DNA from: Nageia nagi
Taxonomy: Eukaryota; Plantae; Pinophyta
Reading direction: 5' to 3'
Length of the DNA stretch: 64,000 nt
NCBI GenBank assembly: GCA_050084985.1
Contig: JBITNC010000001.1
Location: forward strand, 27,838,001 to 27,902,000
The notes beneath the pieces are model-generated. The model was not told the DNA's origin. It made no database searches and worked only from the letters and a program-made list of their open reading frames with translations. The position numbers were made by a program, and so were the translations under genes. The stretch's first letter is position 1. Every line of letters starts with the position of its first letter. Shown here piece after piece: positions 7,571 to 18,504 of the stretch.

Positions 7571-8070
7571 TGTTGGAATGTATAATGCATTGTTGTAAAG
7601 GTTTTGTAATAATATTCTATCTAAATTTACTAATAATTAAGGGTATCATTTGATACCTTAAGTATTTAAGTGAATATAATAATGTAACTTGTCCTGCACT
7701 CCATGTCATGAGCATGCCCCTTAGGTAAAAGGGAGTTGCATGTCATGCCTTTGTACATTGGGTAAAAAGGTGATCAAAGAGGGATTTTAGCCTATAAATT
7801 GAAGGATTCCTCTTTGTGATCACACAACCAATTTGTGGAGTAAAGTTATGCTAGAGGATAGTGTTTAGGAGATGAGTTTAGAAAGATTGTAAGAGTTCAT
7901 ATTATGAATGAAATGAGATCTAGTTAGTGGATGTACTCCTAGTTAGAGGAACCACTTATATTTTGAGTTATCTTTATGAGATTGCTTTGTGAGTTTGTTA
8001 GATGTGAATTATGATCTTTCATGTGATCTTGGGAATATAGAGTTATTTATGTTATAGTTCAACTCTCTCA
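7571..8070 (+). mobile_element. Solo LTR (500 bp), copia-type
   Basis: TGTTGG...TCTCA ends, exact 5-bp TSD CTTTA (7566-7570 and 8071-8075), TATA box cctataaat, homologous to 31205-31702. Confidence 0.9.
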
Positions 8071-9100
8071 CTTTATTATTATTACATTAGTAAAATTTAT
8101 AATTTGGTTCTCATTCTTTGCCTACATAATTATTTATGTATCCTATTATGTTTCCTTGTATTTTTTGTCAACCATCAATGTATAAGAGTTTTGAACACTT
8201 CGAATGTGAAATATCAAAAACATTTGCACATATTCCATATGTTGACATACTGTAGATATATGATGTTAGTTATTTATAAACCTTTGCTATGTAAACTAGC
8301 CCATAAAATGGCGTTAATGGCTTTATCTCGAAACTTGGAGTAACAACCACAATACTATGTATAATTAAACTATATTTAGAGTAATTTGTAGATGGTTTAA
8401 TCATCTATCGATGATCATAATAAGGAAATATCTCATAAGCCTTTGAAAAAGGCCTTTCAACTCACCATGCATCATATGTTCCACGATCATATGTATGTTG
8501 ATATTTAAGTTATAGTTTTTTATGACATGTTCATCAAACCCAAATCATGAACATCTTCCTTTGTTAGATCAACTAGCTCCTCATGTGTAGTAGAACATGC
8601 ATCCACTGATAATTGATGAAGTCACCTTTGAAGTCTTGTTCTTATAAATATTATTCTAACTTCATCTGATGGACCTACACATTGTTTTGTCTTCATCTAC
8701 TGGATCTACACATTGATTTTATTTAGTTTTATTTATTTTTTAATTCAATATATAAGAATTCAAAAATTAATTCAAATTTTGATACTAATTGTCTCATGGC
8801 CATCATCATCTTTTGATGATGAGTATGAATCATTAATACTTTGTACATTTTATTCCTACAACATTAGCCATAAAATGGAGTTAAATATTACAAATAATAT
8901 CATGAAAGTAAGAATTTAAATGATATTACATTTCTATACCATACATAATAACATTTAGTTTACCTTATCCTCATTGGATGAAACATCACTCCTCCTCACA
9001 GGACCTACAGGAAATATCTTAGGATCTGAATTATATGTCATATCACTCCTCAACCTCCAAGGAACTCGTGTAGGCAAATCTTATGAATCAAATGACACAT

Positions 9101-9589
9101 TGTTAGAATTTGTAATGAAATATTGTGAATATCTAAACTCCTTGTAAATTCAATTAATCACTTAAGGGTATGTAGATACCTTAAGAGATTAATAGAATTC
9201 TTTAATATGTAGACTTTGACTTTACCAAAGGAGTTAGTTGGTAGGTTGAAGTTTGGTGGTACATTTAATGTAACCCTAACCTTACCCTTGGGTTAAAGGA
9301 AGGTTAGGGAGGTGCTCTCAACCTATAAATAGAGGGCCTCTCCTCATGTAAATATATCTAAGTTTTGAGTAAGATTACTCTACTTGGTTGTGTAGGAGAG
9401 AGCTAGAGAATAGTTGTAAGAGAGACATAGATTTGAGAATAAGAGAACTAGTTGTGGATGTACTCCCAAGGAGGGAGGAACCACATTATATTGATGTGTT
9501 ATCTTGAGTGATTGTGTTATCTTGTGTACACTTGAGTTTCCTAGTCTAAGGTCCTAGAGGATTTGTTTAGATCTAGTTCAAATCCTTCA
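9101..9589 (+). repeat. 5' LTR of copia element
   Basis: tgttagaatt...aatccttca; I count 2 mismatches against the 3' LTR; TATA cctataaat near 9322. Confidence 0.97.
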
Positions 9590-9591
9590 TT

Positions 9592-9605
9592 TGGTATCAG
9601 AGCCA
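9592..9605 (+). promoter_or_regulatory. Primer binding site, initiator tRNA-Met
   Basis: TGGTATCAGAGCCA 2 nt after the 5' LTR. Confidence 0.95.
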
Positions 9606-10248
9606 CGTTGAGGAAGCTCTTTTGGTGTGGAAGCTACATCTTGGAAGTGCTTCATCCTTCTCAACTTTGGAGATCTTCATTCTTCATTGTGAGGTAAAAG
9701 GTTTGCAAAGGTATAACCTTCTATCCTTCTTTAACTAAGTTCATTATGATACTAATCTTTTGTATGATTATGTTAGCTCAATGGCTTAGCAATACCATAA
9801 TATATTTTTGCTATTCTCTTCTTACTAACAATATTTTATGTTAGTAATCTATTTTTAATGTACAAAGAAAATGTTTATTTTTTCTTTTGAGCAAAAATAT
9901 ATTATGATAGCATCTTATTGAAAAGTTTTTACAATAGTCTTTTGTGAAAAATATCAGAAAAGGAGGAAGGTGCAATTTTTTTAATATTTTATTGTTGAAA
10001 TAAAGAGGAGGACAATTTTCTTTAAGGGCACAATAATATATTTAAATGATACCATATATATATATATATATATATATTTTTTATTTTTATTTAAAATATA
10101 GTCAAAAATATATACATATATATATATTTTTATTTTAAATTTGTTTTTCAATACTCAAAACTGTTTAAAATAAAAATCAAATAAATATAAAATGTTTATA
10201 TTTAAATCGAGAGGGGTAAGGGCAATTTAATTGTCATTAAATTCAAAA

Positions 10249-10731
10249 CTAATACAAATTTATTTCAACGAGGGGGGTCCACGCGCCTGCAGCGCTGCTG
10301 GTGGCGGCGGCATTGGCGATGGCTCCATCGCTGCGGTGTCCGGAAGTGGATTCGCCACCTGCACAACGCCCCGAGTCCACTCCCTGCAAGCTGGGACAAT
10401 CCTCCTCTGGAGGCGGCGGGGTGTATGAAGAGAAAGGTAGAGCGGCTTGAGCGTCGCATGGGAGAGAGGGAGAGACATCGGGTAGAGGTGGAAAGATGTG
10501 AAGTTGGGGTGGTGGGTGTAATAAGGGAAGCGAGGTTTGAGGGTTTTAAAGATGGAGGTGATGGGGCTTGATAAAACCCGCATTAACGTCTTGATAGAGA
10601 TCATCGTGAGGAATTTCTTCTTCTTCTTCGGCTGTTGGTCCACCACAGAAGGCACCATTAGCATGGGCATTGGCATTGATATTGGCATGGTCTTCCTCTC
10701 CGTAGTCCAACTGCTCCTCGGACTGATCCAT
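10249..10731 (-). pseudogene. Antisense ORF inside copia leader resembling the N-terminus of CFIm68/CFIm59 (CPSF6/7); one internal stop
   Basis: MDQSEEQLDYGEED...AEEEEEIPHDDLYQDVNAGF resembles plant CFIm68/59 N-termini as I recall them (EEQLDYGDEE...DDLYNDVNVGEGF). After TAA at 10546-10548 the same frame stays open for 98 Pro/Ala/Gly/Ser-rich codons. Segment is GC- and CpG-rich. Confidence 0.65.
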
Positions 10732-11622
10732 TGGAAGGTCACACCGCATTATGCAGACTACGTTTCGTGGCCTGCAATGATCGTAGAGTCTGCACCAAAC
10801 GAATACGTTGACAGGACCTGATTCATAGCCTGCACTGCTCGTATCCCGCCTGCCACGAAAACATGCACCACCATCTCCCTCGCCAACCACAGACCCGACT
10901 TCCCTGGACTGTACATGCCCGCAGGATAAACACAAAATGGCTACATCTATAAGGCTTCACGACATGCCTTTTTTTTTTCTTGTTGTTTTTGACTTTTCTA
11001 CCCTACCGCCTCCGCCCGCGCTTCTGCCGCCCCGCTGGTCTGCGCTGGCTCACCCCTACCCACACGCTTACCGCCTCCTCGCCGACTTTGGCCCCTAGGA
11101 GCCTTTGGTCACTCACCTGCCTCATTTTTTTTGTTTCACACATCACTTTGAGGTGTTTATTTTTTTCTCTCTCTTCCCTCTTAAACCATTTTTTTTCCTC
11201 TCCTTACCATTAAAATAACAACAAGCATTAATTTCAGTCAAACCTAGTTGGATAAAACTTTTTTTCCAAAAAGGAGGCTAATTTACTGTTTAATTACTTG
11301 CATATTTTCAATGCACCATTGGCAACGTATACTCTCATTGGTGAGAAGAAAAAGGGGGAGTCATCTTTTACAACTACCATGCATTTAATTGCTTCTTGAC
11401 TTAGGTCTCTTTATTTTTAGTGCTTCCAAGTCAATTGCTCCATTAAATGCCCTTAGGAGTACTTAGACTCTTTCTCATATTTTCCTCCACCTTGCATGTT
11501 TAATTTCAATATGCACTCTCTAAGCATGGTTACACGGGATAACACTTTCAGTAAAAAGGGGGGGCCTTGGTATAATTTTTTTACTTACATTTTATCTAGA
11601 TGTTGCATATGATGCATAAAAC

Positions 11623-11845
11623 ATGCTTAGGACTTAAATTTTTAATGCATGATGCATGCTTACTTAAAATTTTAAGTCATGATGTTATAAGTATGCTTAG
11701 GACTTAAATTTTTAATGCATGATGCATGCTTACTTAAATTTTAAGTCATGATAGAATGCATGTTATAAGTATGCTTAGGACTTAAATTTTTAATGCATGA
11801 TGCATGCTTACTTAAATTTTTAAGTCATGATACAATGCATGTTAT
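11623..11845. repeat. 70-78 bp tandem repeat x3 in copia leader, each unit with an inverted repeat
   Basis: Units start at 11623, 11693 and 11771; gacttaaatttttaa pairs with ttaaaattttaagtc. Confidence 0.9.
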
Positions 11846-12649
11846 GAATTAAATACTAAGTAGGACTTAGTTCTTTGTTTAATTCATTAAGTGCTTGAAT
11901 AAAGTGAGAAAAATATGAACAATGTAAAAGTCCTTTAGGGGTTAGAACAAAACCCATTGGACTCAATTTTTTTGGCCTCTTAAGGTTTCAAGTTCGTGTG
12001 GATGGAGTATTTTTCACCTTACTTTATATTTTTTGCACATTTGCTTATACTTGCAATACGCAAAAATTTGGAAAGTAACCCCTAAAATGAATACATCCGC
12101 ACGTATTTTCCACAACATGACTTGTTTGGGGAGCCATGAGGTGAGGACAGGGCAGACTGGAGCCCTTTTAGTCCGAAGAACCAAGTGGTGGTAAGTCCGT
12201 CTTAATTGCCCCTAAGACCTCTGTTGGATTGGATATAACTCTATTAGGTGGACAGACATGTGTGTAGTGATACCACATGTCCGCACGTCCATTCAGGGAT
12301 TATCCTGATAACCTAGGAGGAAAACTGAAACCCTTAATCAAGATAATTAAAATGGCCGGTCCAAGATACGTCGGATCCTTGGAAAATAGTAGGTACTTCT
12401 CCTTGTGAGAGTATATCACTGACCAAGGTGAACTGGTTGAGGACTGGTAGTACCTGGGCTCCACCTTGCGGGCATCCAGGTGAAGGCCTAATTCTATACA
12501 AGAAAACAACCCCAACTTTATCCTTCTATGGATCGTGGTTAATGAGTTTACACATGTGGGACATGTTTGCTTATTAGGTGTTTTATATGTATAGATGAAA
12601 ATTGTAAAAGTTTACATTCTTATTGCATATTCATTTGTTTTTTGTAGCA

Positions 12650-15600
12650 ATGGTTGAAACCTTCGTTCCCAAGCACATACTCGATGGTTCCAACTTTGGA
12701 ATATGGGAACCACGTATGAAAGCTGAGTTACAAGCAAGAAAGCTGTGGCAGACAGTTAGTGAAGATGCGGTTGCTCCTACCGATGAGAAGGCTCTTGAAG
12801 TATACAACTCAAAGAATGAGTTAGCAACTTCTATGATTTACCGTGCAGTTTCAGATGATGTCCTTCTCATGATTTCTTCATCAACTTCAGCAAAGGAAGC
12901 TTGGGATAGGTTAAAGAAAATCTACCTTGGGTCCAAATTTTCAAGAAGGTTTACCATTCTACAAAAGTTGTTGCAGTATCGACAAAGTGAAGATGAAAGT
13001 GCCTCCATCTACTTAAACAAAATCATTGACCTCAGGACACAACTGGTTGGTTGTGGATGCAACTGGATCAATGATGAGTTCATGGTCTTCATCATTCTAC
13101 AAAGCCTTACTACAAAGTTCAGCAACTTTGTCATAGTTATGGAAACAAGGCTCGATGATGAAGAAGATGTCATCTCACTTGATAACCTTTCAAGACTTCT
13201 TCTAAAGCATGAGGAAACTTTGAACAAGAAAATGTTGAACCTTTCTCCAAAGGACCATAGCATTACTCTAGGAGTAATCAAAACTCCTTTCAAGAAAAAG
13301 TTCAAACATTACAAATTCAAAGACAACAAGTCCTCATCTACCTTCAGGAAGTATGACAAAAAGGGCAACAACAACAACAAAAACAATCATGGCAACTACA
13401 GGCACAGAAATGATAAAGCAGGATCCAGCAATCCAACACCTCAGGAAAAGTTTGATGGGAATTGTAACTTCTGTGACATCTTTGGGCACAAAGAGTATGA
13501 TTGTCGCAAAAAGAAATTTGCTCAAAAAGGAAAAGGAAATGCAAATGTGAGAAATTTCAATAATAAAAAGAAGAACAAGCATGCTGCTTCTGTTGCCTAC
13601 TATTCAATGACTCAAACTATTTCAAATGATTGGATTGTTGATACAGGATGCACTAATCACATGTGTTATGAAAAAGATAAGTTTGAAAATTTTCATAAGT
13701 ACAAAAAGGATGCAGTTGTGATAGGTGATAATACAGTCCTTGATGTTCACGGAATAGGAAGTGTGAAGATTCATGGAAAGACTCTTGACAATGTCTTTTA
13801 TGTGCCTAAACTAAGGATGAATCTCATCTCCGTGATTCAAATTACAAGGAAAGGATGCTCATTTGAGTTTACCTCACACTCTTGGTGTGTTAAGAAAGGA
13901 CTTGCCACTTTGATGAAAGGATCAGTAAAGAATGACCTTTATATTGTGGATCAAGTACCTTCAAAGATTTGTCTTGCTACAAATGTTTGTTCAAAAGGTA
14001 ATCTTTAGCATCAACGATTAGGACACCTTAACCACAAGAGTATTCAAGATATGAAAACTCAAGAACTTGTGGAAGGTTTACCTAATATTTCACCCACAGT
14101 TGGTCTTTGTGAAAGGTGCATTCTAGGAAAGATGCATAGGCAAAAGTTTGAAAAAGATAAGGCAACTCGGGCTACTTGTCCTCTTCAACTTGTGCATTCA
14201 GATTTGATGGGTCCTTTTCAGACTAAGTCACTAGGTGGAGCTTCTTATGTTCTGACCTTCATTGATGACTTCAGTAGGATGGCATTTGGTTATCTACTTG
14301 AGCACAAGGATCAAACTTTTGACAGGTTTCAAGACTTCAAGGCACTTGTTGAAAATCAAACTGATTTTAAGATCAAAATGTTGAGATCTGACAATGGGGG
14401 TGAATATAATAGCAATGAGTTTAACGACTTTTGTGTTAAACACGGGATTAAGCGACAATTCACAATCCCTTACACCCCTCAGCAAAATGGAGTTGCTGAA
14501 AGGAAGAATCGCACCATTATGGAAATGGCAAGATGCATGTTGGGTAACCTTCCTAGTTTCTTATGGGGCGAAGCTGTACACACTGCTATTCACACCCTAA
14601 ATAGGTGTCCTACTAAGGCAGTTGAAGGTAAAACTCCATATGAAGCATGGACAGGAAAGAAACCTAACCTCTCACACTTCAGGGTCTTCGGTTGTGATGC
14701 ATTTGCCTTCATTACCTCAGAGAAAAGAAAGAAGCTAGATAAACGATCAGAAAAATGCATCTTTATGGGGTCTGATAATCAGCATAGAGGTTACAGGCTC
14801 TACTCTTCATCCCATAAAATAGTCTTTGTGTCTAGGGATGTTAAGTTCAATGAACTTTCTGAGGATACCACCTCTCATGCTGAAGTATCTGATACAGATG
14901 ATTCTTCGCCTGCACCTAACTGGTTGGATGAGCATGTAGAGAAGTCACCACAAGAGCAAAATTCTCCAGCACAGAGAATTACAAGAAGTATGACCTTGAA
15001 TAAATCCTTATTTGCCAAAATTGATAATATGCATGAGCCATCCACCTTCAAAGAAGCTTCCAAGCAAGAGTGTTGGATGGAAGCTATGAAAGTTGAGTAT
15101 GAGGCTCTCATGAAAAATGAAACTTGGGATTTGGTTCCTTATCCCAATGAGAAAAATGTGATTGGCAATAAATGGATATACAAGGTCAAGTACAATTCTG
15201 ATGGAAAAATTGAAAAATACAAGGCAAGATTAGTGGCCAAAGGATTCGCTCAGAAATATGGTATTGATTATGAGGAAACCTTTGCTCCTGTAGCCAAGAT
15301 GCCTACTGTCAGAATAATTCTTGCTCTTTCTGCTAGCTCAAGGATGGAAAGCTTTTCAACTTGATGTCAAAAGTGCATTTCTCAATGGTGACTTAGATGT
15401 TGAAATCTACATGAATCAACCAGAAGGATTTATTCTCAGCAGGAAAAGAGTCTCTTGTGTGTAAGCTAAAGAAATCTTTGTATGGACTTAAGCAAGCACC
15501 TAGAGCATGGTACAAGAAAATTTCAGGATTCTTTGCAGATATTGGTTTTTCCAAGTGCTTCTTAGATTCAGATCTATATGTACTCAATCAAGGACAAGAC

Positions 15601-16582
15601 GTGGTCATAATACTCCTTTATGTGGATGATCTTCTCATAACAGGCAATAATATTACAATCATCCAAGAGTGCATCTCCAAACTCAAGGCAACATTTGAAA
15701 TGACTGATCTAGGTCTATTGCATTACTATCTTGGGATGCAAGTATACCAACATAAAGATTGTACTTATCTTAGTCAATCTAAGTATATATCAGACATCTT
15801 GCAAAAGTTTGGAATGGAGGAGTGTAAATATGCTGCAATACCTGTTTCTCCTGGAATCGTTGTCTCACTGAGCTCAGATTCTCAATTGGCTGATGCTACA
15901 GCTTATAGAAATTGATTGGTAGTCTTCTGTATCTGACTATCTCTCGTCCTGATATTGCCTTTGCAGTAAATCTGATGGCATGATTCATGCAAAAACCATA
16001 TGTTGAACACCTCAATGCTGTTAAGCAAATCTTGAGGTATGTCGCAGGGACAAAGGATCTTGCTCTTAAGTATTCCAAAGTGCCCTCGATTGTTCTCTCA
16101 GGGTTCTCAGATTCTGATTATGGGGGAGATAGAGATGATAGAAAATCAACCTCTGCATATGTGTTTAGCATTGGTTCAGGTGCTATCTCTTGGGCTTCCA
16201 AGAAGCAACCTACTGTGATTCTTTCTACCACCGAAGCGAATATCGAGCCATGTTTGTTGCCGCCCAAGAAGCTATTTGGCTAAGACATCTTCTGAATGAA
16301 ATTGGGTATCAGCAAAATGGCCCATCTCTTATTTCGTCAGATAATCAATCGGCTATCTCTTTGGCTAAGAATCCTGTGTTCCATCAGCGAACCAAACATG
16401 TAGAAATCCAAGCTCATTTTATCAGGGAGAAGGTTCTAGATGACATCATACACTTGCAGTATTGTCCATCTACTGACAACTCCACTGATTTATTCACCAA
16501 GCCCCTTCCTGAAGCTCAGTTCTGCAAGCTTAGGGATTCTCTAGGGTTGGTGAAGTTGCCCTCAAGGGGGAGTGAAGTTTAA
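12650..16582 (+). pseudogene. Copia gag-pol polyprotein with 2 premature stops and ~4 frameshifts
   Basis: Gag start LDGSNFGIWEPRMKA, Zn knuckle CNFCDIFGHKEYDC, protease WIVDTGCTNHM, L*HQRLGH, integrase LVHSDLMGP/LRSDNGGEY/QQNGVAER, RT KARLVAKGF/LLYVDD, RNase H DNQSAI/TKHVEI. Lesions at 14006, ~15335, ~15435, ~15910, 15981 and ~16238. Confidence 0.95.
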
Positions 16583-16641
16583 ACTTTTGTTAGTGATGAC
16601 AACTTCACCTCTAAGAGGCCTTTTTTGATTGTACATTCTAG

Positions 16642-16922
16642 ACCTCCGTGGTAAGTTTGCTCTGTGTGACAAACTTGTTGTACAATTATTGTTATAGAGT
16701 GTTGATTATTTTATACCTCAGTGGTAAGTTTGCTCTGCGTGACAAACTTGTTGTACATTTTATACCTCCGTGGTGAGTTTGCTCTGCGTGAGAAACTTAT
16801 TGTACAAATTTTGAGCATGTAATTTAATATACCTCCGTGGTAAGTTCGCTCTGCGTGACGAACTTGTTGTACATTCTATACCTCCGTGGTGAGTTTGCTC
16901 TGCGTGAGAAACTCGTTGTACA
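16642..16922 (+). repeat. Array of five 43-nt stem-loop units in copia 3' UTR
   Basis: acctccgtggtaagtttgctctgcgtgacaaacttgttgtaca at 16642, 16715, 16764, 16831 and 16880; spacers of 30, 6, 24 and 6 nt. Confidence 0.92.
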
Positions 16923-17403
16923 ATTTTTATGCTCTATTTTTAAAATCAACACATGTCTATATACAACAGGTGACTATGAGTAATGGCTTGGCATCTCCGT
17001 GATGGCTTATAGTGCACCATTGATCAGTTATTTATAACATGGCATTATTTAATTCTCTTATTTGAATATATGATGCATCTAACTGATTTTGTTCATGAGT
17101 TGCTTGTAGCATGCAGGATCTTCTTCAGAAAATGCAGGTTACTCACCTTGTGAAAGCAAACTCATGGAGACTCACATGTCAGCTTAAAGTTGATCGACTA
17201 CTATGTACAATGAAACCAGTTGTGGTTAATGATTGTATTGTAAACCATTTTTTGTCAAATGGTAATGTAGTGAGTCTCATACTAGTTCTCAAAAAGATTC
17301 TCAAAATATGTAAAAGTTCTCATCTCCACTTGTATCTCTATGGAGGAGAACTCTCTCTTACTCTCTCTCTTCTCTCTTCTACACTCTATCCCAATATTGC
17401 ATT

Positions 17404-17412
17404 AAGGGGGAG
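17404..17412 (+). promoter_or_regulatory. Polypurine tract
   Basis: AAGGGGGAG immediately before the TG of the 3' LTR. Confidence 0.9.
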
Positions 17413-17901
17413 TGTTAGAATTTGTAATGAAATATTATGAATATCTAAACTCCTTGTAAATTCAATTAATCACTTAAGGGTATGTAGATCCCTTAAGAGA
17501 TTAATAGAATTCTTTAATATGTAGACTTTGACTTTACCAAAGGAGTTAGTTGGTAGGTTGAAGTTTGGTGGTACATTTAATGTAACCCTAACCTTACCCT
17601 TGGGTTAAAGGAAGGTTAGGGAGGTGCTCTCAACCTATAAATAGAGGGCCTCTCCTCATGTAAATATATCTAAGTTTTGAGTAAGATTACTCTACTTGGT
17701 TGTGTAGGAGAGAGCTAGAGAATAGTTGTAAGAGAGACATAGATTTGAGAATAAGAGAACTAGTTGTGGATGTACTCCCAAGGAGGGAGGAACCACATTA
17801 TATTGATGTGTTATCTTGAGTGATTGTGTTATCTTGTGTACACTTGAGTTTCCTAGTCTAAGGTCCTAGAGGATTTGTTTAGATCTAGTTCAAATCCTTC
17901 A
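17413..17901 (+). repeat. 3' LTR of copia element
   Basis: Near-identical to 9101-9589 and followed by TSD CACAT. Confidence 0.97.
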
Positions 17902-18504
17902 CACATCACTCCTAATAACCCTTTAGTGTTGAGGTAATGACATTTAAACATTTGAATATGATGACATATCAATCCAATCCTCTAACACTAAAATAGTAGC
18001 ATATGAACATCTAAATATGATGACATATCAATCCTCCCATACCTTGACATAATGAATACTATACCAATAGTATCAAATAATAAAATTACAAGATCCTAAA
18101 CTATGAATATAAATGATCATATTATTCAAAATAAAGTCAAAACTAGAAAAATCCCTAATTTCATTATTATAAAAAAATACAAAGGCCCCAAAATATTTCC
18201 AATGGCTTTTTAAACATTCAATGTTTACAAAAAACTTAAAGGTTCTAATTTAGAATTTATGGAAAATGGTTCAAATAGGAAAAATGTAATTAGCTTTTTG
18301 TGATTTAATGGGAATGCCTGTAATTATTCCTTTAAATGCATAACTTTTTTTGAAAGCTCACTATACCTATGGGAGGAAAATTCAAATGCTTTTCATCATT
18401 ATTGAAGTACATGCATAATATTTAGGAAGGCTATAGAGGGCATTGTTCCCTCAAACATAATAGCTTCCAGTCCTTCCAACACCTCCACTTCGATTAGAAT
18501 TAAT

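Follow-up and report, generated by a model that had tools for sequence, protein, structure and literature searches.

About 450 bp of host coding sequence was identified in antisense orientation within the leader of a Ty1/copia retrotransposon. The sequence reads as the 5′ coding end of a gene of the CFIm68 type, a polyadenylation factor. We interpret it as a passive, decaying host-gene fragment that was captured in the variable part of the leader and is tolerated there in a probable intron, and we give this interpretation a probability of roughly three in four. The antisense reading frame does not function as a gene of the element and, being a fragment, is no functional member of the CFIm68 family. 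All positions refer to the window, that is, the whole stretch of 64,000 nucleotides that was analyzed (Nageia nagi, contig JBITNC010000001.1, positions 27,838,001 to 27,902,000 of the forward strand).

The element lies on the plus strand at 9101-17901. Its two LTRs are 489 bp each (5′ LTR, 9101-9589, with TG...CA ends; 3′ LTR, 17413-17901) and are 99.6% identical, a difference of 0.4%. The element is flanked by the target-site duplication CACAT, which was read directly at 9096-9100 on the left and 17902-17906 on the right. A primer-binding site of the initiator tRNA-Met type, TGGTATCAGAGC, is located at 9592-9603 on the plus strand and was also present in the sister locus L006, and the purine tract AAGGGGGAG stands just before the 3′ LTR. 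The coding region (12650-16582, plus strand) was delineated from the list of open reading frames, the Pfam matches and the reading frames. It has the order gag-protease-integrase-RT-RNase H, with the Pfam domains Retrotran_gag_2, Pol_BBD, rve, SH3_retrovirus and RVT_2 following one another in the copia order. This gene order, the tRNA-Met primer-binding site and the 5-bp target-site duplication are those of a Ty1/copia element. The frame in the window is broken by one in-frame stop, at 14006-14008, and by frame changes at three or more places (near 15364/15457, 15915/15987 and 16190-16283). Because the LTRs, target-site duplication, primer-binding site and polypurine tract are present but the coding frame is interrupted, the element is a young yet non-autonomous copy. 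An array of tandem repeats of about 49 nt, with units 86-93% alike, lies past the end of pol, ahead of the 3′ LTR (16625-16928). A separate stretch 1.1 kb upstream of the element (7862-7984) matched part of the LTR (9389-9514) at 76% and is probably the remnant of a related LTR.

The gag ATG is located at 12650, and the leader is about 3 kb long with a GC-rich island in its middle. The GC content was 0.49-0.56 over 10200-11100 vs 0.16-0.39 in the flanking leader; over 10250-11100 it was 0.545, with a CpG observed/expected ratio of 0.79. The corresponding CpG ratios were 0.0 in the 5′ LTR, 0.23 in gag-pol and 0.22-0.31 in the remaining window. The base composition agreed with the original prediction, made from the letters alone, of a GC- and CpG-rich island inside an AT-rich copia leader. 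On the minus strand of the island, an open reading frame starts from an ATG at 10731 and reads MDQSEEQLDYGEED...EEEEEIPHDDLYQDVNAGF. The predicted frame of about 160 codons with one TAA was recovered as 161 codons including the final stop, with a single internal TAA at codon 62 (10546-10548), and the same frame stays open down to 10252. An EEQLDY motif is encoded at 10702-10719, and DLYQDVNAG, the CFIm68 N-terminal signature, at 10576-10602, both on the minus strand. The other landmarks named in the prediction are likewise present in the sequence: a TATA-like ttatagat on the minus strand (10952-10945), a GC-rich block upstream of the frame (10733-11140; GC 0.54, CpG observed/expected 0.90) and, downstream of it, an AT-rich, (TA)n-like low-complexity tract (10040-10250), from where onward the sub-family leader has a depth of about zero. 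Six-frame reading of the GC-rich block gave no recognizable coding sequence, and comparison of the whole leader with Rfam gave nothing near threshold. Around the island, neither terminal inverted repeats nor target duplications were found beyond AT-rich palindromes, and an exact look-up of six open reading frames of the window found none of them on record. Further along the leader (11612-11845), an AT-rich unit of 70-78 nt occurs in three tandem copies.

Contigs of four sequencing runs were compared with 9101-14000. X1 is an air metagenome, and X2, X3 and X4 come from one related or identical plant; X1 and X2 were treated as DNA-like and X3 and X4 as RNA-like, these run kinds being guesses. 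Within the compared region, the X3 and X4 contigs lay over 10249-10740 only. One type of contig showed 10 differences and no gaps over 10488-10732 (245 nt), an identity of about 96%, and a second type, probably a paralogue, showed 26 differences and 18 gap letters. The contigs extended 92 and 76 nt past 10732 into sequence unlike the window, and another contig had a loose end of 255 nt below about 10284, allowing for a small indel near 10300. Since the transcript-like contigs leave the window sequence at both ends, the host-gene homology is confined to 10284-10732 on the minus strand. The captured fragment is about 450 bp long, begins 1 nt before the ATG, runs colinear with the mRNA to about codon 150 and ends before the RRM. 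The donor sequence exists apart from the element and continues beyond the fragment.

Capture of a fragment had been offered in the original prediction as the alternative to a functional module, and it was this alternative that the independent transcript-like contigs upheld, being about 96% identical over 10284-10732 and diverging at both borders. At 10548, where the element has TAA, every contig gave a sense codon, which agrees with the proposed origin of the stop from a Gln codon (CAA). The idea that the TATA-like site and the GC-rich block represent the 5′ region of the parent gene had to be abandoned, as the transcripts part from the window sequence 1 nt before the ATG. The GC-rich block was also considered as the donor promoter or a 5′ UTR carrying a UTR intron. 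This candidate was rejected: no AG acceptor is present at 10732/10733, and the nearest acceptor-like site, at 10773, would leave 40 alignable nt, which did not align.

The open reading frame was used for protein searches as two pieces kept apart at the internal stop, the first of which is 61 aa long. Neither piece contained a Pfam domain. With the first piece, phmmer against 1.84 billion representatives returned one unrelated low-complexity repeat protein, which was rejected on inspection; the PDB sequences gave no match at E up to 10, the ESM Atlas gave no usable match, and a scan of JGI metagenomes gave no match. A homologue search with the same piece (residues 69-129 of a 129-aa open reading frame) yielded no candidate among lengths of 71-226 aa, a range outside which full-length CFIm68 falls. 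With so short and disordered a query, and with an uncertain share of plant sequences in the libraries, these blank searches carry little weight.

The open reading frame was compared by eye with the plant CFIm68 sequences in the supplement of PMC3538716. All sequences of this supplement have an acidic N-terminus with DDLY-[N/S/G]-DVN-[V/L]-G (PMC3538716). In two grass proteins, Sb06g019410 and Bradi5g12840, the motif takes the form DDLYGDVN(V/L)GF(I/L)P and is followed directly by a Pro-rich stretch, and a Pro-rich linker after the N-terminal motif is found in Sb07g028800 as well (PMC3538716). A moss protein in the CFIm68 set has EEDLDYE about 26 residues upstream of EEDLYGDVNVG (PMC3538716). 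The frame in the window shows an acidic run, then DDLYQDVNAGFIKP, then a Pro-rich stretch, as in the two grass proteins; both the signature DDLY-x-DVN-x-G and the Pro-rich linker are present. Over DDLY-x-DVN-x-GF(I/L), 10 of 13 positions agreed by eye with Sb06g019410 and Bradi5g12840, at an equal distance from the N-terminus. The window EEQLDY lies about 33 residues upstream of the DLY motif, which parallels the moss arrangement. When the window was translated in all six frames, the core pattern DLY.DVN.G turned up a single time; it turned up in none of 300 block shuffles.

The frame thus resembles the plant CFIm68/CPSF6-7 proteins (At1g13190, At5g55670, Sb06g019410, Bradi5g12840 and Pp1s138_94V6; PMC3538716) in its acidic N-terminus, DDLY-x-DVN-x-G(F) and Pro-rich linker, and GF(I/L)P directly after the motif is the form of the divergent grass CFIm68 clade. 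Unlike these proteins, it comprises only about 150 N-terminal codons with a premature stop. The CPSF6/7-type RRM, which binds CFIm25, is absent from the frame, as had been anticipated, the transcript homology ending at about codon 150 before any RRM; the C-terminal charged (RE/RD/RS-like) domain is absent too, the fragment ending at about 10284. The proposed likeness to the plant CFIm68 N-terminus was therefore supported by DDLY-x-DVN-x-GF, the acidic run and the Pro-rich stretch, but not by a significant search match. The string containing "LDYG" that the original prediction gave for plant CFIm68 was found in none of the CFIm68 sequences of the PMC3538716 supplement, which have only looser forms such as EEDLDYE (moss) and EENDYGG (At1g13190).

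On this motif evidence, compared by eye, the donor was very probably a gene of the CFIm68 family. A donor from outside the family, with the motif a coincidence in an acidic, disordered N-terminus, would accord with the lack of a significant match in Pfam, PDB, the 1.84 billion representatives and the Atlas, with an RRM that is not visible and with a comparison made by eye. We consider such a donor improbable, as the 10 of 13 agreeing motif positions stand at the same N-terminal distance as in Sb06g019410 and Bradi5g12840 and lead into a similar Pro-rich stretch, a further motif upstream (EE-x-LDY) is common to the moss protein, and the core pattern did not arise in the window shuffles.

The ten differences between the element and the closer contig type were classified. 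All contigs read the non-window letter at each of the ten sites. Three differences were synonymous, six non-synonymous and one nonsense; eight were C>T or G>A in the direction from transcript to element, with five in CG, two in CHG and one in CHH context. As read from these small numbers, and with the direction taken without an outgroup, the pattern is the one left by deamination of methylated DNA, and it shows no trace of purifying selection. With ten differences only, dN/dS is indistinguishable from that of a fast-evolving disordered N-terminus, and part of the difference of about 4% could be species divergence, the source plant of the runs being maybe a sister species. The letters of the element itself at the ten sites appeared in no contig of the four runs; contigs drop rare variants, so this is weak evidence of silence, and contigs show presence, not absence, strand or level. 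The CpG observed/expected ratio of the island (0.73-0.90 vs 0.0-0.3 around it) fits a recent arrival.

In the DNA-like runs, the summed depth differed greatly along the element. It reached 5x10^4 to 1.4x10^5 over the LTR and gag, 10^3 to 10^4 over the outer leader (9593-10084 and 11397-12052), 10 to 100 over 10741-11396 and 0 over 10085-10740, which holds the CFIm piece; the DNA runs are shallow, and a depth of 0 means "not multi-copy" rather than "unique to one copy." The copia family is hugely repeated, the long leader is present in a minority of copies, the GC-rich block and its right flank are low-copy, and the CFIm piece is below detection. Low-depth contigs from X1 and X2 covered parts of 10741-11396 (10872-11358 among those listed) at about 96-98% identity and did not contain the CFIm piece. 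Such contigs within 10733-11396 suggest that the leader cargo was assembled stepwise. The copia family was at very high depth in the air metagenome X1; the sampled air was presumably rich in pollen or spores of the source plant or a near relative.

A metagenome scan with gag yielded 23 plant-derived loci of 53-80% protein identity and two distant ones. In seven sister leaders, each with at least 1.8 kb of upstream sequence, neither the CFIm piece nor the GC-rich block was found at the DNA or protein level. As to whether the fragment is passed on by retrotransposition, with identical junctions in several copies, the two shallow DNA runs gave a depth of 0 and the sister loci lacked the piece.

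The leaders of related elements share an architecture. On the left, the primer-binding site and about 170 nt are conserved, with a donor-like GAG/GTAAAAG at the end, in both the window and L006. In the window the donor-like signal lies about 100 nt past the primer-binding site (9691-9699), and the acceptor-like TTTTGTAG precedes the gag ATG by 2 nt (12640-12652); both signals are conserved in most related elements. Eight of 11 related elements have TGTAG 2-4 nt ahead of the gag ATG. By these consensus signals, a putative leader intron (GAG/GTAAAAG ... TTTTGTAG/CAATGG; 9694-12647, plus strand) would enclose the whole island, and the leader of about 3 kb is probably in its entirety an intron with a variable middle. 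No spliced contig across the leader was seen in the four runs.

On the right, 11909-12530 (plus strand) is 82-90% identical in nucleotides to its relatives and was also present in L001 (1060-1651), L002 (5192-5783), L006 (5206-5823) and others. It is better conserved than gag, the gag proteins of those elements being 60-73% identical, and had the highest DNA depth of the entire element (about 1.4x10^5), above the LTRs. Comparison of this part with Rfam found nothing; it may be a packaging or dimerization signal, or a module common to several copia families. Between the two conserved parts, all five distinct leaders with sufficient upstream sequence have an AT-rich tract, a GC/CpG-rich island and about 1 kb of AT-rich sequence. 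The sister islands (L002 3801-4200, L006 3000-3900, L003/L016 1-400, L007 1-400 and L017 4000-4400) occupy the same relative leader position as the island in the window and are mutually unrelated except for the near-identical pair L003/L016. Some are internally repetitive, and their open reading frames had no match in Pfam.

In the history that we propose, one copia lineage acquired about 450 bp from the start of the coding region of a CFIm68-type gene, and the piece settled, antisense to the element, in the variable central portion of the long leader. If the leader is an intron, the cargo would be carried in the full-length genomic RNA and not in the spliced gag-pol message, and captured cargo would be cheap for the element because it is spliced out of that message. 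Inside a methylated element, the fragment would then lose C and G by deamination and gain the premature stop. Candidate modes of capture are template switching, filler-DNA repair and stepwise accretion beside an older GC-rich block. With a co-packaged mRNA and template switching, the sense orientation would be the more natural outcome; the abrupt junctions beside the (TA)n tract and the older low-copy GC-rich block could also fit filler-DNA repair or stepwise accretion. Any antisense bias could simply mean that cargo in sense orientation was lost where it introduced splice or poly(A) signals.

The fragment might have an effect without coding for a protein. The full-length sense RNA would carry about 450 nt antisense to the host CFIm68-type mRNA, or siRNAs directed against the silenced element might reach the donor gene, and either could amount to an epigenetic or RNAi effect on a 3′-end-processing factor. 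The antisense orientation, the identity of about 96%, in which stretches of 69 and up to about 160 nt are free of listed differences and leave ample room for 21-24-nt matches, and the representation of the copia family in the RNA-like runs would all suit cross-talk of this kind. siRNAs between captured fragments and donor genes are known in maize from Sirevirus, Helitron and Pack-MULE captures (10.1101/777037). We nevertheless regard it as unlikely in either form: the element version of the piece was in no contig, the surrounding leader had zero or near-zero depth in the RNA-like runs, and the piece is at most low-copy. Cross-talk would in any case be a by-product of silencing and not a designed module.

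The piece could also be foreign to the retrotransposed unit and a latecomer to this single copy, brought in after integration when a break was repaired with filler DNA or within another small mobile element nested in the leader. Its depth of 0 in the DNA-like runs while the neighboring 10741-11396 is detectable, and its abrupt junctions at 10732/10733 and near 10284 beside the fragile (TA)n tract, are what late entry would leave behind. It is somewhat less probable still than cross-talk, since no terminal inverted repeats or target duplication flank the piece and the sister elements all have a GC island at this place, the slot being a feature of the family. In addition, the piece differs by about 4% from the expressed gene vs 0.4% between the LTRs, which suggests, if the runs are conspecific, that it is older than the insertion.

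A broader interpretation makes the slot itself the main subject. A copia lineage may have a fixed slot in its leader intron, between the conserved PBS-proximal part and the strongly conserved 600-nt part upstream of gag, into which CpG-rich foreign DNA, host exons in antisense among it, enters again and again; the CFIm68 piece would then be just one of many such cargoes. We hold this only as a long shot. If true, the full-length RNA would be antisense to host mRNAs, in the window to that of a core 3′-end-processing factor, with silencing camouflage or interference with host RNA processing as possible consequences.

Some plant LTR retrotransposons carry additional or antisense open reading frames that are conserved across the copies of a family. 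The frame in the window is similar to these in running opposite to gag-pol in a noncoding part of the element; unlike them, it is interrupted, has a cellular donor and has no relative in the seven sister leaders. The proposal that the element encodes a mimic or dominant-negative form of CFIm, an acidic peptide of 61 residues (or 160 by read-through) that titrates CFIm25/FIP1, with an antisense transcript starting at the TATA-like site, can draw on such antisense frames, on the two retained N-terminal motifs and on the TATA-like site with its CpG-rich block, and yet is very improbable in both its parts, given the stop at codon 62, the neutral-looking and mainly non-synonymous changes of the deamination type, an upstream block that is not the promoter or UTR of the donor, the lack of detection of the piece in DNA runs rich in the family, its absence from the sister leaders, and the lack of element-type letters in any contig. 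By the refuting conditions set in the original prediction itself, the mimic is thereby largely refuted. A working mimic of a polyadenylation factor would be striking; the evidence points to a decaying fragment of a kind catalogued by the hundreds in maize, rice and sorghum.

Passive capture has ample precedent in plants. Maize Bs1 is an LTR element with a captured gene fragment (PMC13317346), and 425 intact LTR elements of maize carry gene fragments that trace back to at least 189 captures (PMC2774510). Captured gene fragments are held by 3% of maize Sireviruses, which are copia elements (10.1101/777037); LTR elements of sorghum contain more than 1,300 transduced sequences, and rice has many LTR-derived genes (PMC13317346). 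The piece in the window lies between both LTRs of an element with the target-site duplication CACAT and, like those captures (Bs1; PMC2774510; 10.1101/777037), is a partial, non-functional piece of a cellular gene. As in those captures, the donor gene persists and is expressed elsewhere, and the fragment is prone to methylation and could be a source of cross-talk siRNAs.

The fragment is one more case of the known capture of gene fragments and offers a clean worked example that shows the junctions of the capture, the transcript of the donor and decay of the methylation type. The shared architecture of the copia leaders, with a conserved left part, a variable GC island, a conserved right part and splice-like borders, raises the question of how and why cargo accumulates there. 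The case differs from the known ones in the part captured and in the leader site. Its intron-like leader site, where relatives hold unrelated GC islands, and its undetected propagation set it apart from other plant LTR captures. The captures of maize Sireviruses are mostly of 3′ exons (10.1101/777037), whereas the piece in the window is the extreme 5′ coding end of its gene, beginning one base before the ATG.
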